Sequence record: NC_062581.1
Strand: one strand, 5' to 3'
Length of the DNA stretch: 64,000 bases
Shown: positions 2,655 to 52,214 of the stretch, one piece after another
Position numbering within the stretch: the stretch's first letter is position 1
Layout: each line of letters begins with the position of its first letter
Program-made: the position numbers and the translations under genes
The notes under the pieces: model-generated
What the model saw: the letters and a program-made list of their open reading frames with translations, nothing else
What the model was told of the DNA's origin: nothing
The model's database searches: none

Positions 2655-2897
2655 GTGGATGCATATCTGTCAATAGCTAGATACTTCACAGGAATGGGTG
2701 GTCTGCTATTAGCTATTATTGTAGTTTTAACAATCTTGTTACTACTACACGTAAAAGAAAGTAATGTCAGTGGTGAGTACTACGACTTCTTTTCTACCTT
2801 TTATATCGGAACAATGTTGGGATTGGCTTTGCTGTTTATAACCGTCCCTACGCTTTGTTTTCTCCGATCTACCCTCATGTGTTACCAGGTGATGTAA
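2655..2897 (+). CDS. Small two-TM membrane protein
   Basis: AAGGAG SD, GTG start; TM-DFFST-TM architecture. Confidence 0.65.
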   Translation: MDAYLSIARYFTGMGGLLLAIIVVLTILLLLHVKESNVSGEYYDFFSTFYIGTMLGLALLFITVPTLCFLRSTLMCYQVM

Positions 2898-3118
2898 TGC
2901 TCTTAAACATAGCCACAGTCATTCTAATGACACTAATTGTATTAACACCTACAGTTGTAGGTTTCTTGGTGATACGGTTTCGTAAAAACCCTAACGGGTT
3001 AAACCGTTATCGCAAACCACTGCAAATTGCAATACCAATTCTCATGGGCATAACAATTGTTTTAATGGCCATTGTGTTCTATGAGATAACCCAGATACAA
3101 AACAACCTGATGCCTTAA
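2897..3118 (+). CDS. Small two-TM membrane protein
   Basis: TAATG coupling at 2895-2899; basic loop RFRKNPNGLNRYRK between TMs. Confidence 0.65.
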   Translation: MLLNIATVILMTLIVLTPTVVGFLVIRFRKNPNGLNRYRKPLQIAIPILMGITIVLMAIVFYEITQIQNNLMP

Positions 3119-3120
3119 CA

Positions 3121-3168
3121 CGGCATAAAGCCCACCCTTCGGGGTGGGCACTATGGTTATTTTTTTTT
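3121..3168. terminator. Bidirectional terminator between convergent genes
   Basis: CGGCATAAA-GCCCACCC-TTCG-GGGTGGGC, then T-run. Confidence 0.85.
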
Positions 3169-43890: not shown

Positions 43891-44226
43891 ATGACTCAAA
43901 CAACTATCCACCCTATCCGTTCTTTCATCGAATACATCACCGATGCTGAATCCGTATGGGACCCAACCCGTTACATTCAGGGCCGTCGTCTGAGTGATAG
44001 CAACGCTGAATTCGAATACATGCTTACGTATTCGTATCTGCTGGGTGGTGCTTACATGACCGGTACTTTTGGTAAAGAAGGTATCACTGTTGAACTGTGG
44101 TTCCGTGACACCCAAGGTTTCCAAATTGCTGTTTCTCTGGACGGCAAAGAACTCGATCGTTTCAGCTACCCACCGCACGCCACTGAAGAAGTCATCCAAC
44201 GTCTGGAACATCTGGCTTCTGCTTAA
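43891..44226 (+). CDS. Hypothetical early protein
   Basis: TAAGGA SD; strongly biased codon use. Confidence 0.72.
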   Translation: MTQTTIHPIRSFIEYITDAESVWDPTRYIQGRRLSDSNAEFEYMLTYSYLLGGAYMTGTFGKEGITVELWFRDTQGFQIAVSLDGKELDRFSYPPHATEEVIQRLEHLASA

Positions 44227-44257
44227 CCGACAATTCCCCACATTAAGAGTAAACATC

Positions 44258-44533
44258 ATGCGCACTTTTCTTCTTGTTACTGCTGGTCTGGTTGTATCCG
44301 CGGTAGCAACATCCTGGAACCAGTCTCGTTTGAATCGTAATGATTACATGCGTGACATCCCAAAAGAAATTGAAAGCGAAATGCAAAACTACACTTTCAA
44401 GCCTTCTTTTGAAGAGCTGAAAGAAGACCTGTCGCATTTTGAACACTGGGCGCGTCTCTGCATTATGCATGATTCGCACCGTGAAGAGTTCATCGAAGAG
44501 CTCAATAAACAAATCCGCATGGCAACTCGCTAA
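44258..44533 (+). CDS. N-terminal TM protein
   Basis: MRTFLLVTAGLVVSAVATSW... Confidence 0.68.
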   Translation: MRTFLLVTAGLVVSAVATSWNQSRLNRNDYMRDIPKEIESEMQNYTFKPSFEELKEDLSHFEHWARLCIMHDSHREEFIEELNKQIRMATR

Positions 44534-44546
44534 GTAAGGAATCATC

Positions 44547-44987
44547 ATGACGCAGTCTAAACAACACACCTCTGCTGAACTGGCTACTTTCCGTGCACAC
44601 CTGTCCCATCAGGTTATGCAAGCAGCATTTACTTTTGGTCCTCGTTCTCCGATGGCCCAACAAGTAACCCGTGGACATCAGATCTACAAGATCGATTGTG
44701 CCGTGGAAGCAGATCGCATGACCTATACTTTCATCTACGATGAAGCAGGTGGTGTTGTGAAGGCTGTTGAAGAAGTGTATCCTACGGCAGACGATGCTGT
44801 TCAGAAATATGTTTGCCAACGTTTCAATGTAATGCTCTTTGGCCAAAGCGTTGAAGAACATGCATCCGTTACAATCGACGGTATCGAAGTGGATGACCAT
44901 TTCGAAAAACTGTTGGACGACGGTGTGATTCGTAACTTCTTTCGTGAGACGGTCGTCCGCGATCGTACCGAAAAAACCATTAACTAA
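44547..44987 (+). CDS. Hypothetical early protein
   Basis: TAAGGA SD; 146 aa. Confidence 0.72.
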   Translation: MTQSKQHTSAELATFRAHLSHQVMQAAFTFGPRSPMAQQVTRGHQIYKIDCAVEADRMTYTFIYDEAGGVVKAVEEVYPTADDAVQKYVCQRFNVMLFGQSVEEHASVTIDGIEVDDHFEKLLDDGVIRNFFRETVVRDRTEKTIN

Positions 44988-45247
44988 TGGACACAAAAGT
45001 GATAAACAAATTGCATGCTAGTGAACGTGCATTCGATGTGGATGCAATCATCAAGTCAGCTGAAGAACAGCAGTTTTACGAAGCTCGCAATCCACCGAAT
45101 CTTTCTAACAAGGATCGCAAAAACCTGGCGGTATTGAGACACAATGAAAATTATGTTGCGCAAAAAGAAAGCTCCGCTGAGCGAGTGATGCGCGATGTAA
45201 AAGAATACCGTGAGTTGATTAACAACGAACTACCGTTAGCTAAATAA
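44987..45247 (+). CDS. Hypothetical early protein
   Basis: TAATG coupling. Confidence 0.65.
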   Translation: MDTKVINKLHASERAFDVDAIIKSAEEQQFYEARNPPNLSNKDRKNLAVLRHNENYVAQKESSAERVMRDVKEYRELINNELPLAK

Positions 45248-45250
45248 GAC

Positions 45251-45271
45251 ATGGGGGATTCGATCCCCCAT
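45251..45271 (+). terminator. Perfect hairpin after 44987-45247
   Basis: ATGGGGGA-TTCGA-TCCCCCAT; no U-tract. Confidence 0.5.
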
Positions 45272-45337
45272 AGTCCATCTGCAAGATATCATATCGATGC
45301 TTTGCAAATGCACTATACCCCACATTAAGGATTCAAC

Positions 45338-45508
45338 ATGAAAGGCGTAATCTTCTTCCTGGTTGGCGTTGCTGTTAGTTCTGTCTCGTTGTCGAACTTG
45401 GTCACTATGGCTGATGATCGCCGGGCTGTACAAGTTGTAGCTAAGCAAGAAATCGTAATTGGTCATCGCATTGGTTCTTTGGGCCAAGAAATCCTGGTGA
45501 CCAAATGA
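45338..45508 (+). CDS. 56-aa signal-peptide/TM microprotein
   Basis: TAAGGA SD; MKGVIFFLVGVAVSSVSLSNLV... Confidence 0.62.
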   Translation: MKGVIFFLVGVAVSSVSLSNLVTMADDRRAVQVVAKQEIVIGHRIGSLGQEILVTK

Positions 45509-45828
45509 AAGAGTTAATCGATATCGTTGCATTGATTGCCCCATTTGTTTTGGCTTTCATTGTAACGTTCTTCGAGGCATTTGTTAAATCGTTCCAATCC
45601 CGTAATATTGCCCAAGGTCATGAGTGGGTAGCGGCAGGTACTTCGGTATTAGTCACTACTACCATTTTTGCAACCTTTGGGTTATTTTTGCATTCGGGTT
45701 GGATAGTATTTGTACCTTCTGCTTTAGGGGGTGCAATGGGTACGTTCTTTTCTATACGCACCCACAAGAAATTGTTTAAAGGCATAAAGCCCCCTACCCC
45801 CAATTTAAGCGAAGGAATAAAAATATGA
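45505..45828 (+). CDS. Small multi-pass membrane protein
   Basis: Three hydrophobic segments; VKSFQSRN, AAGTS, LGGAMG; ATGA coupling. Confidence 0.7.
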   Translation: MKELIDIVALIAPFVLAFIVTFFEAFVKSFQSRNIAQGHEWVAAGTSVLVTTTIFATFGLFLHSGWIVFVPSALGGAMGTFFSIRTHKKLFKGIKPPTPNLSEGIKI

Positions 45829-46028
45829 ACGCTCTTAAATATCTGGCACTCGGTGCAGCTGCTGGTGCAATCATGGGTACTGGTATCAGCCTGGTTCGTG
45901 AAGGTGTACGTGTGACCGTCAATGGTCGTGAGGTTGACAAACTGGTTGTTACCGGTGTCGGTGTAGGCATGACCACCGTCGGCTTCTGTGTTGCATTGCA
46001 GACGATTGTATCCGCCCTCAAAAAGTGA
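45825..46028 (+). CDS. Gly-rich two-helix membrane microprotein
   Basis: AAGGA SD; GxxxG-rich helices. Confidence 0.68.
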   Translation: MNALKYLALGAAAGAIMGTGISLVREGVRVTVNGREVDKLVVTGVGVGMTTVGFCVALQTIVSALKK

Positions 46029-46062
46029 TTTAAAACATTTAAAAGGCTATATTACAATCGTG
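46029..46062 (+). promoter_or_regulatory. Early promoter
   Basis: TTTAAA 46029, TATATTAC 46048-46055. Confidence 0.85.
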
Positions 46063-46092
46063 TCAATAACCCATTAACTCAAGGAGTGTCTA

Positions 46093-46290
46093 ATGTCTTT
46101 GGCAACTAGATTAATTTCCGCAGCAGGTTCGGGTGCAACGATTGCTTCTGGTTTGGTATTTGCCAACATGGGAATTCAAAGCAAGAAGTATAGTCGCACT
46201 AAAGACCTGGCTAACAATCTGTTAATTGGTGGTGGTGCTGTTATCACCGTAATCGGCGTGGCTAACATGGTCAACGCTTTTCGCAACTAA
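46093..46290 (+). CDS. Gly/Ala-rich two-helix membrane microprotein
   Basis: AAGGAG SD. Confidence 0.68.
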   Translation: MSLATRLISAAGSGATIASGLVFANMGIQSKKYSRTKDLANNLLIGGGAVITVIGVANMVNAFRN

Positions 46291-46317
46291 TTTCTGAAAA
46301 CATTAAGGTTAACAATC

Positions 46318-46440
46318 ATGGGTACTTTCGGTAAGATTATTGTTCTGGCAATTGTAATGGGTGCGGTTGAACAAGTTGTCCTTTCCATTTCGGATAGCTA
46401 TCGCCCCAACCCTAAAAAAGATGAAAAAGGTCAGAAGTAA
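46318..46440 (+). CDS. 40-aa signal-anchor microprotein
   Basis: TAAGGT SD; MGTFGKIIVLAIVMGAVEQVVLSISDSYRPNPKKDEKGQK. Confidence 0.6.
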   Translation: MGTFGKIIVLAIVMGAVEQVVLSISDSYRPNPKKDEKGQK

Positions 46441-46482
46441 TTCTGCCGTTCCAAACCTCTTAATTCAACAGTGAGTATCACC

Positions 46483-46614
46483 ATGATTGTTAAAGCTTTC
46501 TCTGAAATGGGCACCTTTGGTAAAATTGTTGCTATTGCAATAGTCATTGGTACCACTCGGCAATGTGTTAAACATGTTGCCCAAACCGTTCGCATGAACA
46601 AAGCTGCAAAGTAA
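46483..46614 (+). CDS. 43-aa microprotein, paralogue of 46318-46440
   Basis: MIVKAFSEMGTFGKIVAIAIVIGTTRQCVKHVAQTVRMNKAAK. Confidence 0.6.
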   Translation: MIVKAFSEMGTFGKIVAIAIVIGTTRQCVKHVAQTVRMNKAAK

Positions 46615-46673
46615 AATAACCCCCCTCGGTCTCTAAGAGGCCAAACCTCAAAAGCGAAAGAAGGAATAACACC

Positions 46674-46850
46674 ATGTTCAATACTGTCCTCCGTGTTGCT
46701 GCTGTTGCTGGTCTGTGCTACATCTCTTTCCAGGTTGGCCGTAACTGGAATGAAATTGCTGCTGATGCAGCTGAAGTAGTTGCCAGCACCGCTGATCCAC
46801 AAGTTCCTACTGGTCCTGAAACCGGTACCACCATTCCTACTGGGGAGTAA
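46674..46850 (+). CDS. 58-aa signal-anchor microprotein with Pro/Thr tail
   Basis: AAGGA SD; MFNTVLRVAAVAGLCYISFQVG... Confidence 0.62.
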   Translation: MFNTVLRVAAVAGLCYISFQVGRNWNEIAADAAEVVASTADPQVPTGPETGTTIPTGE

Positions 46851-46853
46851 GCT

Positions 46854-47138
46854 ATGTCACTGCTCGGTACCCTGATCAAAGTCGGTGTCGTTGCCACTGT
46901 AGTTGTTATCAGTCAACGCCTATGGGATCGCTATCAGGTTGAAGACCTGTATACCGAACTCGATGCATTGGTTGAGCGCATTCGCAACCGCAAAGACCGA
47001 ATGGGTACCGTGCGTGCTCATCTGCTGGTTGAGTCGAAAGATTTGATCGCTCAGTACGAAAAGAAAGTTAACTACGTAGACTCGTTAAACGAGTTGCGTC
47101 GTAACGTCGAAATTTATATTGAGTCTATTCCAGACTGA
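46854..47138 (+). CDS. N-terminal TM plus coiled-coil protein
   Basis: GGGAG SD; 94 aa. Confidence 0.7.
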   Translation: MSLLGTLIKVGVVATVVVISQRLWDRYQVEDLYTELDALVERIRNRKDRMGTVRAHLLVESKDLIAQYEKKVNYVDSLNELRRNVEIYIESIPD

Positions 47139-47143
47139 TATAG

Positions 47144-47186
47144 CTGGCGGGGGACTTATGTCTCCCGCTAGTACCTTTTCTTTTTT
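47144..47186 (+). terminator. Intrinsic terminator
   Basis: CTGGCGGGGGAC-TTAT-GTCTCCCGCTAG then T-rich tract. Confidence 0.8.
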
Positions 47187-47217
47187 ATATCGCATTACTT
47201 TTATTTAGGGGAACCCC

Positions 47218-47553
47218 ATGACTAATTTTCAGCTTTACGTCATTGGACGTGTTGCCATCAAAGTTGTAACCGTTGGTGTAGTAATCGCCGTAGTTAGAAC
47301 GGCTACCCCAATGCGTCGTATCAATGATGACATCATTCGTCTACGTGCAGAATGGAAAGATTCTAAACTGCATGCATCTATTAACGAACGTTATGCGATT
47401 GGTAAGTTAGATCGAAATGGTTGGTTAGAAGCAATGCACAATGGCCCAGCTAAATTGCTTTGGGTTAACTTGTCTACTGTATACCCTGACCACATTCGGT
47501 TTATTGCAAAACGTATCAAAGAAGAATATCCACACGCAACCAAATGGATCTAA
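47218..47553 (+). CDS. N-terminal TM protein
   Basis: 111 aa; hydrophobic N-terminus. Confidence 0.68.
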   Translation: MTNFQLYVIGRVAIKVVTVGVVIAVVRTATPMRRINDDIIRLRAEWKDSKLHASINERYAIGKLDRNGWLEAMHNGPAKLLWVNLSTVYPDHIRFIAKRIKEEYPHATKWI

Positions 47554-47554
47554 C

Positions 47555-47740
47555 ATGAAGAAATATTTATTGGCAATGTCTATTTGCTGCGCTTGCGTTA
47601 TTGGTGTAGCGCAAGCCATGTTGGAACTCGAAAAACCAGTAGGGGGTGTTTCTGACACTTTCTGTAAACGAGTTAAAAAACCATGCGTGTCATACAGCTA
47701 CGAGGTTCAGCATGAAACGGTCGCTATTAATAAGCCCTGA
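47555..47740 (+). CDS. 61-aa signal-peptide protein with cysteines
   Basis: MKKYLLAMSICCACVIGVAQA signal-like N-terminus. Confidence 0.55.
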   Translation: MKKYLLAMSICCACVIGVAQAMLELEKPVGGVSDTFCKRVKKPCVSYSYEVQHETVAINKP

Positions 47741-48029
47741 AGAAATGCTGATGCGTTACCCGCATCTGCGTCAGGCTTTAAACAATACACCTGCAAAAAT
47801 AGATGTATTGGAAATACCGTTTGACATGGCTAAGCTGATGTTCAAAATTCACTTGACTAATCGGTTACTCAAAACAGGTATTGCTTTAAAAGAGATTCAC
47901 GCTATTCTAGAGGATGATGAAAAAATCAAACCTCTGTTGGCTGAATTAATGGATGAGGTAGTTCCTGGTACCACTTACGTCGAAGTTATTCGCTCTCCCA
48001 GTGTTTTAGATATTAAGGAAAACCAATGA
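47712..48029 (+). CDS. Stand-alone RNAP beta-prime dock-region-like protein
   Basis: IPFDMAKLMFKIHLTNRL ... ELMDEVV....VEVIRSPSVL aligned by eye to E. coli beta-prime [18 protein letters not shown] ... [25 protein letters not shown] SD; alternative start 47745. Confidence 0.55.
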   Translation: MKRSLLISPEEMLMRYPHLRQALNNTPAKIDVLEIPFDMAKLMFKIHLTNRLLKTGIALKEIHAILEDDEKIKPLLAELMDEVVPGTTYVEVIRSPSVLDIKENQ

Positions 48030-48589
48030 TCAAGTTTAGTTCAACGGCTTTGATGTTGTTTAATAACATCCCAGGTAACACTCTCGACATGGCATGGAGT
48101 TTTCATGTCGAACGTTTCTGTCAACAAATGAACGAAGAAAACCCTACGTGGTTGGATGGTTGTGAATTGTTGGAAGAAGATGGTACTCTGGCAGTTAACT
48201 TGATTAATTGGAGTAACGTACTTCACTTCATGGCTGAGCAAGGTAGTCAGTTTCTGGTTGACAACTGCACGTCATACTGGTACATGAAACGCAAAACAGC
48301 TAAGTGGGCTACAATCCCAGGTGAGCATTCGCTTATTGAGTTGTGTTATGTATCATCATTCGGTGATATGTTTGCAGCACACGCTACCGAGTACTTTGCC
48401 TCTCGCGCAGTGGGTGAAGCTAAATACGCTTTGGCTATCCGTTGCAACCAAGACCTAACCACCAAGTGTTCAGGAACTGGTTACAGTGTTGAAGAAGCCA
48501 TTGCCGATAACGATACCTGGAATGCCCTGGAGGCAATGAATGCTCAGAATCCTGCGTCAACTGTTGGGGCTCTGCATCCATCAGTTTGA
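48026..48589 (+). CDS. Hypothetical protein
   Basis: TAAGGA SD; ATGA coupling. Confidence 0.7.
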   Translation: MIKFSSTALMLFNNIPGNTLDMAWSFHVERFCQQMNEENPTWLDGCELLEEDGTLAVNLINWSNVLHFMAEQGSQFLVDNCTSYWYMKRKTAKWATIPGEHSLIELCYVSSFGDMFAAHATEYFASRAVGEAKYALAIRCNQDLTTKCSGTGYSVEEAIADNDTWNALEAMNAQNPASTVGALHPSV

Positions 48590-48611
48590 TGTGATTGCCC
48601 ACAAAGAAATC

Positions 48612-48764
48612 ATGACTCGTCCAAACGGAACATTCCTCTCCATTGACATGGACGGCAAATATGTTTCGCATCACTTGTTTATCAGTGCATGCAAACATTG
48701 TGGAATGCTTCAAACCCGTAAGATCAACGTAATGACAGGAAAAATTTATGTCCGTCGCAAATAA
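48612..48764 (+). CDS. Small CxxC (zinc-ribbon-like) protein
   Basis: SHHLFISACKHCGMLQTR; start uncertain. Confidence 0.45.
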   Translation: MTRPNGTFLSIDMDGKYVSHHLFISACKHCGMLQTRKINVMTGKIYVRRK

Positions 48765-49056
48765 CGAAAAAGGTTGCACTGTTCAAGTTATCACTGATGA
48801 CATGCTTGAACCCGTCAAAGATCAAGCTCTGGGTAAACTGGTTTACTCAATGCGTGGCATGTACATTGCTAAAGGTAGCGATGTATGGCCAGAACGCGAT
48901 GACGTTGCCGATGTGCAAGTCGCTATGGGTGAAATGTATCGCCAGGGTGAGTGGTATCCAACCCGTACGTCCAAGATCATTCGGGTAGATCATGAAAATG
49001 GTTTGGTGGAAACACTGAACTCCATTTACCGCAGTACTGATGGCCGTATTGGCTAA
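48748..49056 (+). CDS. Hypothetical phage protein
   Basis: AGGA SD; RTSKII.VD..NG.VETLNSIY motif seen in many phage proteins (recalled). Confidence 0.65.
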   Translation: MSVANNEKGCTVQVITDDMLEPVKDQALGKLVYSMRGMYIAKGSDVWPERDDVADVQVAMGEMYRQGEWYPTRTSKIIRVDHENGLVETLNSIYRSTDGRIG

Positions 49057-49065
49057 GGGGTTAAC

Positions 49066-49269
49066 ATGCCTTTAGGTATGGCTGGTGGCATAATTGCTGG
49101 CATGATGTTTATGCTGGTGATTACGATATCGTATTGCATTCGGCTCGCCTTTTGTGAGTACACTAATCGGAATGAATCCTTACGGTGGTTGTTTGGATTG
49201 ATTGCGATCGAGGTGTTTCTGATTCTGGTGGCCATGACAAACTACATTGCTCATGGAACCGATACATGA
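49066..49269 (+). CDS. Small two-TM protein
   Basis: Two hydrophobic segments. Confidence 0.62.
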   Translation: MPLGMAGGIIAGMMFMLVITISYCIRLAFCEYTNRNESLRWLFGLIAIEVFLILVAMTNYIAHGTDT

Positions 49270-49511
49270 ATAGCTGGATTCCTTTGTGCGTGGCTATCCT
49301 GGCGCTTGTGATAGCGCTGGGAGCCCTTTATGCCGCTTTGCGCACCAACCGTAAGGTTGAAGTAATTCCGGCACCCTGCCAACACAACTGGGCAATCATT
49401 GAAACAGCCCAAAGATTTAATGATCGTCATCGCTATCTGTGCATTGGTTATGTTTATACCATCCAATGCACTCATTGTGGTGATGTTGATTTTCGTGAAA
49501 AGAAAATTTAG
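49266..49511 (+). CDS. TM-anchored zinc-ribbon protein
   Basis: N-terminal TM, CQHNW and CTHCG; ATGA coupling. Confidence 0.65.
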   Translation: MNSWIPLCVAILALVIALGALYAALRTNRKVEVIPAPCQHNWAIIETAQRFNDRHRYLCIGYVYTIQCTHCGDVDFREKKI

Positions 49512-49519
49512 GAGTTTCC

Positions 49520-50020
49520 ATGAACAAAGAAATTGCTATTCGTCACGGTATCCAAGTGTTGTTCTTTGCCTGCTGGGATGCGTCCATTAAGCAACAGGAT
49601 TATCACCAGCGTCTTCACGCAATGTTTATTCTGGCTGAGGCCGAATATCCTGACGTGATGAAAGAACTGCGGGAAGAGAATTCCTGGTCTCAGTGGAACC
49701 AGCAACGTAATGACCCTGAGCGTTATTTTCCTCAGCAAATTGCAGACGATGTTGTCCTCCATAGTTTCACGCATGTGTTTTTGCGTGAAATGGTTTTCTA
49801 CGGTAAAGGTGATTGGCACCTGGAAGTAGAAGGTAACGTGAGTAAGATTGATGGAAAGATCAATCGGGTCTACTATCGTTACGCAAACATCTTGACAGAA
49901 GAAGTCAAGAACATCGGTAGTCAAACCTTCCATGTGTTGGGGAATCTACCCTTGGAGATACGTAAGCATCTCAACTACCTGGCTGAAGGTAATAATCCAT
50001 TCGAGGTTGATTGCGAATGA
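49520..50020 (+). CDS. Hypothetical protein
   Basis: AGGAG SD; 166 aa. Confidence 0.72.
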   Translation: MNKEIAIRHGIQVLFFACWDASIKQQDYHQRLHAMFILAEAEYPDVMKELREENSWSQWNQQRNDPERYFPQQIADDVVLHSFTHVFLREMVFYGKGDWHLEVEGNVSKIDGKINRVYYRYANILTEEVKNIGSQTFHVLGNLPLEIRKHLNYLAEGNNPFEVDCE

Positions 50021-50265
50021 TTAGTATCAATGTAGTAACTGCTTGGGGCATTGGTAGTTTGTTGTGGCTAATAGTGTTGGTTGGTGCCGCTGCAAATATA
50101 TGGAAATTTGAAGAACGTCTAAAAGAACTTAATGTTTTTAAAGACAAACAACTTCAGTACTTTTGGAGTTGTGTTAAGTTCTTCTTGTTCAGTTTTGCAT
50201 TTGCTGGAGCACTGCTTTGCAGCGCATTGATGGTCCATGCGGACTTTGCAAGACTGGGCTTGTAG
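50017..50265 (+). CDS. Two-TM membrane protein
   Basis: ATGA coupling; GAGG SD. Confidence 0.62.
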   Translation: MISINVVTAWGIGSLLWLIVLVGAAANIWKFEERLKELNVFKDKQLQYFWSCVKFFLFSFAFAGALLCSALMVHADFARLGL

Positions 50266-50278
50266 CAAAGTACTTGAA

Positions 50279-50365
50279 CCCCCTACCTAATGTGAGACAG
50301 GGCTACTAAAAGCATAGGAGGGGGCTTTTTATCGCATTAACCTGGAGAGTAGTTATACTACTCTC
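50279..50365 (+). terminator. Large-loop terminator plus second perfect hairpin
   Basis: CCCCCT-ACCTAATG...CATAGG-AGGGGG-CTTTTT; GAGAGTAGT-TAT-ACTACTCTC. Confidence 0.6.
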
Positions 50366-50409
50366 TTCCTTTGTTCTTAATATCCATTACCCATCACAAG
50401 GAAACCCGT

Positions 50410-50700
50410 ATGTTTGTATCAAACTTTGGAGCACGTCACGTTCCGGTAATCCCGGAAGATAACAATGTTGTTACCTATGAATCACCAGGTATGTTTAAGA
50501 TAGACCTGATTCGTCGTGCACGTTGTGTGATGGGTCTTCATGGTGTTAGTAACTGGGAAACAACCCCACTTAACGGCAACTCTATTCAACATGCTGAACG
50601 CATGATTGTTGGTATGCATAAAGGAGAGTTCTCAATAATGGAACACATCGTGGCGGAGTATGCCCGACATGTAGCCAGCGAGACTGTGTATTGGTTGTGA
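50410..50700 (+). CDS. Hypothetical protein
   Basis: AAGGA SD before MFVSNF. Confidence 0.65.
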   Translation: MFVSNFGARHVPVIPEDNNVVTYESPGMFKIDLIRRARCVMGLHGVSNWETTPLNGNSIQHAERMIVGMHKGEFSIMEHIVAEYARHVASETVYWL

Positions 50701-50708
50701 GGCTTTAA

Positions 50709-51125
50709 ATGAATTACCTTAGTGCAGTAAGAAGTAAGCTTGATCAACACTTAGATCGGATCTTTCAAGATAGCCGGTTTGATAGAGAGAGTCGACGTAT
50801 TATTGCCGAGGTTATTACCAAGGCCATTGCCGATTATCGTTACGGTCCGACTGGTGAACACGATCAGCGTTCTCCATTCATGTGCAATGCTGTCAGTGGT
50901 TATGCAGCAGAACATCCCAACTACACGTATGCAGCTGATTTGACATTGGCCTTTATCGACATGTTGTTAACACTGGACGATGATTGCAATATCACCATGC
51001 ATTGCTACGTGGTTAATTCTCTAACAGCTGAGGAAAAACATGAGCTCAACTCGGAAGAAGACATGCGTCCCTTCCCTGAGATTTATGATTACATCCTGGC
51101 TTGTTTAGTCCCACTTGATTTATAA
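50709..51125 (+). CDS. Hypothetical protein, FMC-motif family
   Basis: GAGG SD; SPFMCNAV. Confidence 0.68.
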   Translation: MNYLSAVRSKLDQHLDRIFQDSRFDRESRRIIAEVITKAIADYRYGPTGEHDQRSPFMCNAVSGYAAEHPNYTYAADLTLAFIDMLLTLDDDCNITMHCYVVNSLTAEEKHELNSEEDMRPFPEIYDYILACLVPLDL

Positions 51126-51134
51126 GGAAGTCCT

Positions 51135-51641
51135 ATGCTTGTAATCCCAACGGCAATGCAGAAAGCCTTGTTCGCTTTGCAGTACCCCGAGGCTCCTCGC
51201 TATGCCGATCAGGTAGCAGGGTTCCTCACTTTTCTTTCTTTGTCCGCCCGTGGTGAAGTTCAAAAAGCGGCTGAAGAAGCAATGTTTGATATTCAGACAA
51301 TTCTCGATGAACGTGATACCCTGGGTGGTTTACTGGTTCTTATGTTTGACGATGTTGTTTATCTGCAATGTCAAAAGCATGCTGAGCAACCCGCGAATTA
51401 TTTTCTGCGGGTGTGTGGTACGCTGGACAACGATCTGGCTACTGCATTTGAATTGGACGGCGTAGTCAATATGGACTTTACTAACAAAGCTCCACGTTGG
51501 CAGCAACAGTGTGTACTGGAATACTTCGATCGCAGTAAGCCTTACGAACTACTCCAGGCAATCGAGTGTCGAGTTGGCATCCCTGCCTACATGTACACCG
51601 GTCTTGATAACAAAGGTACCAATGGCACTCACGACAAGTGA
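51135..51641 (+). CDS. Hypothetical protein
   Basis: TAAGGA SD; 168 aa. Confidence 0.7.
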   Translation: MLVIPTAMQKALFALQYPEAPRYADQVAGFLTFLSLSARGEVQKAAEEAMFDIQTILDERDTLGGLLVLMFDDVVYLQCQKHAEQPANYFLRVCGTLDNDLATAFELDGVVNMDFTNKAPRWQQQCVLEYFDRSKPYELLQAIECRVGIPAYMYTGLDNKGTNGTHDK

Positions 51642-51674
51642 GACCCAATCAAAATTTACGCTAAGGAACAATTT

Positions 51675-52214
51675 ATGAATCTAGCTCAACAACCTCGGTT
51701 CTACCGCATTGTCGTTGGTATCGGTACACCGGATATAAAGTACTATTGTGGTGATGGTGTCTGGACCAGCGATGCTGCTTCCCTGGACATTATTGCAGTC
51801 CCTAAAATCAAAGCTGTTGAGCTGATGACCGTACATGGTCAACGCTTGAGCTATGAGCTCCAGTGGGTGCCAATTACTCACGTGTTGGTCAAATTGGGTA
51901 AGACCTGGTTTACAGTCAACCGTAACACGCAACAACACCATCGGGTAACGATGCGCATCAGTTTTGGTAACGGGTTCTTCATTAAGGACATGGGTACCAT
52001 CGAACACTGTATCGTATTTAACCTGTCCCCAACCTACCGCCAAAGCGTTTATTTCCGCGGGCAAGAAATTACCCGCGTAGAAAGCGACCACGGCGAAGGC
52101 CCAGTAGAAGTCACAACAATCTTTGTCAATGAAGATTGTGAAGCGGCTGCTTTCTTCCATCTGGAAAAAGTACCGCATGCAGGAGATACACCAGCGGATG
52201 ACAAAAGTAGTTGA
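51675..52214 (+). CDS. Hypothetical protein
   Basis: TAAGGA SD; 179 aa. Confidence 0.68.
   Translation: MNLAQQPRFYRIVVGIGTPDIKYYCGDGVWTSDAASLDIIAVPKIKAVELMTVHGQRLSYELQWVPITHVLVKLGKTWFTVNRNTQQHHRVTMRISFGNGFFIKDMGTIEHCIVFNLSPTYRQSVYFRGQEITRVESDHGEGPVEVTTIFVNEDCEAAAFFHLEKVPHAGDTPADDKSS

Follow-up and report, generated by a model that had tools for sequence, protein, structure and literature searches.

The closest described relatives of the element studied here are the N-terminal beta-prime subunits (beta-prime-N) of the non-virion RNA polymerase (nvRNAP) of jumbo phages, represented by phiKZ gp55/gp56.1 (7OGP chain A), PSA21_58 and PHROG 2987. The element itself, gp137, is a stand-alone open reading frame (ORF) of Pseudomonas phage Psa21, a jumbo phage with P. 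syringae pv. actinidiae as its host, and is almost certainly of beta-prime ancestry. The DNA analysed, hereafter the window, is a 64-kb stretch of the Psa21 genome (MK552327.1, 305,260 bp, genus Tepukevirus) corresponding to record positions 62001-126000, to which window bases 46500-50500 are 100% identical; coordinates given for Psa21 are window positions. Homology between gp137 and the nvRNAP beta-prime-N subunits extends over ~75 residues and comprises the IP(W/F) turn, the helix following the first psi-loop, the dock insertion, the R-N/S-P strand and several invariant residues. In contrast to these subunits, gp137 measures 105 amino acids (aa) instead of ~490, lacks the zinc/clamp part, the RAVITS strand, the second half of the barrel and the NADFDGD motif, and carries a new N-terminal motif. 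It also evolves much faster: phages that share 93-94% identity in their gp55 homologues share only ~47% in gp137.

Beta-prime pieces exist as separate polypeptides in organisms with split beta-prime genes, such as cyanobacterial gamma/beta-prime and jumbo-phage beta-prime-N/-C, and cyanobacterial gamma is among the PDB matches of the gp137 family. The natural splits come downstream of a whole double-psi barrel, and each piece is an essential subunit present in stoichiometric amount (PMC7598289); gp137, unlike them, is an extra partial copy ending inside the barrel. The exon-1 products of intron-interrupted beta-prime-N genes, such as phiKZ gp55 before splicing, terminate similarly, at the RN of RNPTL or immediately beyond it and thus short of the catalytic loop. 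Such products are full N-terminal exons (~380 aa) at the normal locus, followed by the intron and joined to exon 2, whereas gp137 represents only the last ~110 residues' worth, is located 65 kb from PSA21_58 and has no adjacent intron or endonuclease. T7 Gp2, T4 AsiA and Xp10 p7 are small phage proteins that act on RNA polymerase (RNAP) by binding and modulating it. Like gp137, they are small, non-catalytic, accessory and encoded in early regions, the likeness lying in the proposed action only; to our knowledge none of them, unlike gp137, is derived from an RNAP subunit. No description of a protein such as gp137 was found in the published literature, as the first-pass annotation had supposed. 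By its sequence, gp137 adds to the RNAP beta-prime family a new variant that stands alone and is non-catalytic.

The features of the gene on which the comparison is based are the following.
47712-48029, + strand: gp137 (PSA21_137 with corrected start), 105-aa stand-alone ORF, almost certainly from nvRNAP beta-prime-N.
47702-47705, + strand: Shine-Dalgarno sequence GAGG, 6 nt 5′ of the ATG, from a comparison of upstream sequences.
47736-47780, + strand: most conserved part of the family, aa 9-23, PEE.LMR.PHLR..L, from invariant columns in the family alignment.
47787-47999, + strand: beta-prime-like core, aa 26-96, equivalent to PSA21_58 302-379 and to E. coli beta-prime ~360-429, from hhalign, hidden Markov model (HMM) and PDB profile matches.

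The ORF starts with ATG at 47712 and ends with TGA at 48027-48029, giving 105 aa; these were exactly the coordinates of the first-pass annotation, and all peptide strings quoted there are present in the translation. In the Psa21 record, PSA21_137 is annotated as "hypothetical" with a GTG start at 47646. This start, which adds window positions 47646-47711, is probably wrong, and ATG 47712 is preferred because of the GAGG at 6-nt spacing, the TACGAGGT-N6-ATG context and the MKR/MSQ start found in all orthologues. Following comparison of the upstream sequences, the TACGAGGT context of the Shine-Dalgarno sequence proved identical at all four orthologous loci. Its bases double as codons for the conserved YEV of an overlapping small ORF. 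At the other end, the stop codon of gp137 overlaps the start codon of PSA21_138 (ATGA).

A beta-prime-N HMM was built from 70 full-length family members, and 600 shuffled sequences were used as controls. gp137 scored 32.0 bits and its orthologues 22.9 and 11.4 bits, all at HMM positions 299-361, against 5.9 bits for the best shuffle. Alignment of the gp137 family with the beta-prime-N family using hhalign, a profile comparison of the kind proposed in the first-pass annotation, gave a significant match (probability 97.5%, E 8.3e-12) of columns 26-96 to PSA21_58 302-379. Conversely, a gp137 HMM scored 181 of the 181 beta-prime-N sequences tested, with a median of 23 bits. The PHROG profile phrog_2987 "RNA polymerase beta subunit" was matched with E 2e-5 (gp137 aa 27-97 against profile positions 307-382 of 478), and tblastn searches of 50,697 phage records retrieved the nvRNAP subunits of pPa_SNUABM_DT01 (E 4e-4) and Noxifer (E 4e-2). 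Pairwise identity was 32% over 77 aa with DT01 nvRNAP beta-prime-N and 27% with Psa21's own beta-prime-N, PSA21_58. When the gp137-family profile was compared with all PDB sequences, the five best matches, with E-values of 0.03-0.4, were all RNAP beta-prime chains: phiKZ gp55 (7ogp_A), C. difficile beta-prime 355-417 and three cyanobacterial gamma subunits (367-434).

Part of the search results would fit a chance likeness between helical sequences. Pfam and NCBIfam returned no match for gp137 (Pfam even at E 10), no RNAP was found by phmmer with the single gp137 sequence against the PDB, and the single PDB E-values of the family profile are marginal. As single-sequence searches are blank and profiles positive, the similarity is visible only with phage-specific or family profiles. 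The Pfam family RNA_pol_Rpb1_2 (PF00623), for which gp137 fails the gathering threshold, is matched by PSA21_58 with 40.6 bits, and this match rests only on residues 373-425, a stretch without counterpart in gp137. Against chance, the three orthologues independently match the same 60 profile positions, 5-26 bits above the 600 shuffles, the profile alignment and the gp137 HMM scores agree as given above, and the top five PDB matches fall in the same region of beta-prime. Chance similarity is accordingly scarcely credible and can be regarded as effectively refuted on these comparisons. By the beta-prime-N homology test gp137 belongs with the family, yet it covers just ~75 of the ~475 family positions. 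A search with PADLOC gave one weak match, to HEC-01A (13.9 bits, E 0.006, aa 14-93 against 154-230 of 371), which is probably a chance likeness of helical sequences and was not taken as evidence.

The position of the segment in cellular RNAP was obtained through the beta-prime-N profile, positions 268-426 of which align to E. coli beta-prime 329-475 and positions 267-430 to C. difficile 317-468. Residues 34-96 of gp137 thereby correspond to E. coli beta-prime ~367-429, close to the ~360-430 that had been read by eye from the sequence. This stretch begins at the CGLP turn, takes in the next helix and the dock insertion, and ends with the NRAPTL strand. The peptide FKIHLTNRLL, described in the first-pass annotation as close to phiKZ-type beta-prime, has its counterpart in LLKYHLTNKL of phiKZ gp55. 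Aligned with 58 beta-prime-N segments, gp137 is collinear over its entire length with PSA21_58 residues ~279-390. The core retains the IP(F/W) turn, the long helix after the first psi-loop, the helical dock insertion and the R-x-P strand. Residues invariant in beta-prime-N are kept across the gp137 family at P36, F/W37, H47 (the invariant His within the helix), L52-K54, E78-L79 and R94-x-P96, including the L-K-x-G and E-L-(M/I) motifs, and R-x-P is present at the C terminus in 3/3 full-length orthologues.

Aligning only to PSA21_58 ~279-390, gp137 has no N-terminal zinc-binding and clamp region of beta-prime. The double-psi beta-barrel is incomplete as well: the RAVITS strand is gone, being replaced by a helical motif, and the second half is absent. 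The first 25 residues have become the new motif PEE.LMR.PHLR..L, which is collinear with the switch-2/first barrel strand region of beta-prime; the resemblance has disappeared, and aa 9-23 are predicted to be helical with low confidence. The alignment stops at the RNPTL motif, and NADFDGD lies ~33 residues further, in line with the earlier remark that the ORF ends before this motif and is not an enzyme. Since the first barrel strand, the second barrel half and NADFDGD are all lacking, gp137 can neither polymerise nor, by itself, complete a barrel. Its last 20 residues show little conservation and low model quality.

Translated in six frames and searched with the beta-prime-N HMM, the window yielded gp137 alone (E 6.5e-9; next best E 1), and no other beta-prime remnants flanking gp137 were present in any frame. 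The gp137 HMM, applied in six frames to the entire Psa21 genome, recovered only gp137 itself and PSA21_58 (27.7 bits, E 6e-7); the virion RNAP genes PSA21_244 and PSA21_245 gave no match, which assigns gp137 to the non-virion polymerase lineage. To judge from these profile matches, its source is a phage non-virion RNAP type, and neither host RpoC nor the virion RNAP. The gp137 HMM shows no clade preference across the 181 beta-prime-N sequences and singles out no donor. In the proposed origin, an internal piece (~residues 280-390) of a gp55-type nvRNAP beta-prime-N gene would have become an independent ORF, and its N-terminal 25 residues would then have been remodelled into the new, strongly conserved motif.

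Dozens of jumbo-phage beta-prime-N gene calls (proteins P0019-P0121) stop at three recurrent points, located after the RN of RNPTL, at APN|AD and inside DFDGD. These recurrent stops indicate widespread intron/endonuclease insertions at the catalytic core of nvRNAP. phiKZ gp55 is the spliced product of gp55/gp56.1 (bioRxiv 10.64898/2026.09.21.753271), endonucleases of introns in jumbo-phage RNAP genes serve competing phages as weapons against one another during co-infection (PMC11620839), and split RNAP genes have been proposed in a review to have arisen by intron mobility and rearrangement (PMC7598289). Origin of gp137 via rearrangement of an intron-bearing allele is plausible because the ORF ends 10 codons after the equivalent of the first interruption site, with an ambiguous boundary: gp137 runs 10 codons and its L007 orthologue 4 codons past the aligned RS/RF, and the P that follows reflects either homology or chance. 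Rfam detected no group I intron RNA within 44000-52000, and no nuclease or endonuclease domains were found in the gp137 neighbours tested. An interpretation of gp137 as an intron remnant was rejected, no Rfam group I intron being present near the gene. The idea that PSA21_138 is its frameshifted continuation with a degenerate NADFDGD was rejected too: gp138 has no beta-prime similarity by BLAST or HMM, gp138 homologues exist without gp137, and another gene intervenes in relatives.

Orthologues were sought with HMMER in 1.84 billion representative proteins (exhaustive search), which yielded two relatives, and by context look-ups and IMG/VR scans, which yielded one more. Full-length gp137 is present in Psa21 (105 aa) and in two metagenomic phages, L007 and L096/L100 (97 aa each), and a version cut to 59 aa occurs in L008/L009, a 317-kb contig and its Logan twin. 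The start and the Shine-Dalgarno sequence are the same at all four loci. At every locus, gp137 sits after a PSA21_136 homologue and a small signal-peptide ORF; outside Psa21, the order is gp137, another small gene and a PSA21_138 homologue. The beta-prime-N proteins of these phages are 93-94% identical, compared with an amino-acid identity of 46-53% for gp137, which falls within the 33-85% range of the neighbouring genes. A profile search for other stand-alone small beta-prime-like proteins, non-exhaustive and limited by word match and length, returned only partial beta-prime-N gene calls on short contigs.

Coding constraint was assessed from substitution patterns. Differences between Psa21 and L007 amount to 0.40/0.32/0.59 by codon position, a coding pattern in which the second position is least changed; synonymous sites are saturated and the nonsynonymous divergence (dN) is ~0.45. 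The three full-length orthologues stay open at 46-62% identity despite this saturation. The key comparison was between L007 and L100, which are 95.3% identical over 7.5 kb containing 20 genes. gp137 is the most diverged of these genes, with 73.5% nucleotide identity against 86-99% for the rest, and the lowest 90-nt window (52%) falls within it. Divergence is concentrated in the following part.
47826-47957 (approximate Psa21 equivalent), + strand: hypervariable part, codons 39-82 of the L007/L096 orthologues.

Codons 39-82 encode the helices after the IPF motif and the dock-like helices. Between L007 and L096/L100, identity drops to 45-52% in this part, with flanks at 95-100%. For L007 versus L100, the synonymous divergence (dS) of these codons is 1.9 and dN 0.53 (dN/dS, or omega, ~0.27); over the divergent part of gp137, dN/dS is ~0.27-0.5 where dS is saturated, and in the genes flanking gp137 dS is 0.05-0.37 and dN <=0.02. 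As dS is raised along with dN, the divergence is not due to fast evolution in place. The pattern points to an old divergent allele that recombined into a near-identical backbone, with coding constraint during the long separation. Mutagenesis by a diversity-generating retroelement (DGR) was rejected as cause of the hotspot: the 78 L007-L096 mismatches are spread over A (26), G (24), C (14) and T (14) and cover all codon positions, without an adenine-specific DGR spectrum. Old, very divergent gp137 alleles would thus move by recombination between near-identical genomes, and conflict-related accessory genes are often likewise exchanged as old divergent alleles. Constraint on gp137 appears moderate (closest-pair omega 0.6, repeated losses), and it is likely that gp137 is maintained as a protein-coding gene. 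In place of a decaying fragment with no orthologues under selection, which the first-pass annotation had named as the outcome that would speak against a role, intact orthologues with coding-pattern substitutions were found.

With respect to function, gp137 is tentatively interpreted as a selected, non-catalytic, beta-prime-derived accessory protein that acts by binding. This interpretation is favoured, with less than even confidence, as gp137 is small, lies in an early-type region, is dispensable and allele-diverse, keeps invariant residues and has acquired a new N-terminal motif. It would be an accessory gene of Psa21-like nucleus-forming jumbo phages. That binding would take the form of mimicry of an RNAP surface is a more doubtful proposition. 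In that case gp137 would carry a replica of the phage polymerase's dock-side surface, and would compete for or titrate a partner that binds there, candidates being the sigma-like gp68-type subunit, another nvRNAP subunit, or a host or rival-phage factor recognising the patch. Given the phage nvRNAP source, mimicry would most naturally concern phage polymerase partners; import and assembly of nvRNAP rely on subunit-subunit recognition (bioRxiv 10.64898/2026.09.21.753271). A still more specific version, in which gp137 would be an early-made, diversifying decoy of the dock side of the nuclear RNAP that absorbs or misdirects a recognising factor, is unlikely. The factor may be the sigma-like or assembly subunit of a competitor phage in co-infection, or a host or rival inhibitor aimed at nvRNAP, and a constantly shifting target would be what keeps the alleles diverse and in exchange. 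A decoy role as such, which the first-pass annotation had raised, would be compatible with the observed allele diversification.

A number of observations weigh against a binding role for the beta-prime-like surface, in addition to the blank Pfam and NCBIfam searches. gp137 is missing at the corresponding position of L094, L097, L098, phage D6 and phage RVTF4, and the L008/L009 allele keeps only its first 56 residues. With absence from five relatives and truncation in one, gp137 is dispensable and any function is non-essential; the truncation further implies that the dock-like helices are dispensable at times. For the closest pair of alleles, the overall dN/dS of 0.6 is not clearly <1. An unbiased AlphaFold model based on the three orthologues is helical with a predicted local distance difference test (pLDDT) value of 65, and Foldseek found nothing meaningful for it in the PDB. 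After addition of beta-prime segments to the alignment, pLDDT rose to 73 (78-90 for residues 31-80) and the topology became strand-helix-helix-helix-strand; the top 50 Foldseek matches in the PDB were then all RNAP beta-prime, the best being phiKZ gp55 7ogp_A (probability 0.97, template modelling score 0.49). This second model is circular and not independent of the homology, as its alignment included beta-prime segments. Moreover, free gp137 may not show the same surface, because the segment is largely buried in the intact barrel.

Alternatively, gp137 could be an exapted helical-bundle scaffold with a function unrelated to RNAP, in which the N-terminal motif PEE.LMR.PHLR carries the activity; both this possibility and the accompanying one, that the motif binds for example a host or phage target outside transcription, are open to considerable doubt. 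They would agree with the remodelled N terminus, and not the dock-like helices, being the best-conserved part, with the hypervariable part coinciding with the dock-equivalent helices, with retention of only residues 1-56 in the truncated L008/L009 allele, and with the location of gp137 among many small early-type ORFs of unknown function. Family-wide conservation of beta-prime-N-invariant residues, including R-x-P in 3/3 full-length orthologues, would be unexpected for a generic scaffold. A role as trans-acting extra subunit or swappable module of a split phage RNAP, put forward in the first-pass annotation, is very improbable. Jumbo-phage RNAPs are assembled from split beta/beta-prime pieces, and it has been postulated that middle promoters are served by an alternative form of nvRNAP (PMC7598289). 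What makes the module unlikely is that PSA21_58 keeps the complete homologous segment intact; in addition, gp137 has lost the RAVITS barrel strand needed for insertion into the fold, is missing from five relatives (absence extending to phages with 93-94% identical beta-prime-N), and has no virion-protein mark in the Psa21 record.

It is also rather improbable that gp137 is a non-functional remnant of a partial duplication or of an intron/homing-endonuclease rearrangement, kept open by chance or by overlap and in the process of being lost. The patchy distribution, the reduction of one allele to 59 aa, the poor C-terminal 20 residues and the closest-pair dN/dS of 0.6 would suit a remnant, as would the overlap of both gp137 ends with other ORFs. 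So would the many beta-prime-N genes broken at RN|PTL and APN|ADFDGD, with gp137 ending 10 codons past RS|PSV, together with the splicing of phiKZ gp55 and the proposed derivation of split RNAP genes from intron mobility and rearrangement (PMC7598289). This is countered by the three orthologues that remain open with saturated synonymous sites, by the second codon position being least changed and by the conserved start and Shine-Dalgarno sequence; nearby beta-prime remnants are absent in every frame, intron RNA was not detected and a nuclease domain was not found in the neighbours tested. Furthermore, a neutral remnant cannot be 25-50% diverged in flanks that are 0-5% diverged, unless alleles are kept and exchanged.

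Neighbouring genes and promoter-like motifs were located as follows.
47555-47740, + strand: unannotated 61-aa ORF with a signal-peptide-like N terminus, from the ORF list and homologue alignment.
48026-48589, + strand: PSA21_138, 187 aa, a separate conserved family without beta-prime similarity.
48540-48764, + strand: second unannotated gene, a 74-aa ORF in a 158-nt "intergenic" gap of the record.
L007 595-1035, L005 2664-3122 and L006 2681-2986: intervening gene of relatives, not in the Psa21 window.
47143-47172, + strand: terminator-like hairpin with a 13-bp stem and T run, upstream of PSA21_136, from a consensus scan only.
46047-46055, + strand: nearest upstream copy of CTATATTAC, a predicted early promoter core of the phiKZ/201phi2-1 type, 1.66 kb 5′ of gp137.
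2417, 41271, 41508, 42406, 43848, 46047 and 54245, + strand: copies of CTATATTAC; the six examined are all intergenic.
47188-47197 and 50330-50339, + strand, also 59179: 10-mer TATCGCATTA, the first two sites bracketing PSA21_136-142.

The 61-aa ORF overlaps the start of gp137 by 29 nt and is always directly upstream of gp137 in relatives. It shares 48-62% identity with its L007 and L008 homologues, including two conserved cysteines, and is masked in GenBank by the PSA21_137 annotation, which reaches back to GTG 47646. PSA21_138 is translationally coupled to gp137 in Psa21. Members of its family in D6, RVTF4 and metagenomic relatives, some of them without gp137, are 28-45% identical, and PSA21_138 has no match in any domain library. 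Between the gp137 and gp138 homologues of relatives lies a conserved gene of 101-146 aa that is missing from Psa21. In phage D6, the coding sequence annotated for this intervening gene (2664-3122) extends into the stretch homologous to gp138, which begins at 3001, and takes up its first third; annotation of the gp138-like gene starts only at 3094. The 74-aa ORF is 50% identical to a called 74-aa gene of L007 (1450-1674) and has a CxxC-like pair.

CTATATTAC is the core of the predicted phiKZ/201phi2-1 early promoter (PMC7058600 Table 2). Seven exact copies occur on the + strand of the window, against 0.47 expected, and several are preceded by TTTAAAA and followed by GTG, as in the predicted early promoter of the 201phi2-1 type. 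The hairpin at 47143-47172 falls between gp137 and the nearest CTATATTAC copy and is a possible 5′ boundary of the gp137 transcription unit. At two intergenic sites, TATCGCATTA follows a terminator-like hairpin and T run; it may represent a second promoter class, and as a motif is not significant when one mismatch is allowed. Of the "early island" in which gp137 had initially been placed, the run of small same-strand genes with early-promoter-like motifs is seen; its early character is plausible and not demonstrated.

Multisubunit RNAP subunits are among the most conserved proteins known, and no free-standing non-catalytic derivatives of the RNAP catalytic core were found in the searchable jumbo-phage literature. 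gp137 is intact in several phages and appears coding-constrained, yet it is the sharpest divergence hotspot of its neighbourhood. Even if it proves functionless, the annotation of Psa21 is corrected here, and gp137 would document the seeding of new ORFs by rearranged, intron-rich RNAP genes. If the decoy proposal were true, Psa21 would be the first case of a virus turning part of its own polymerase into a weapon or shield in conflict. gp137 is a cheap, well-defined candidate regulator or decoy of the phiKZ-type nuclear RNA polymerase.

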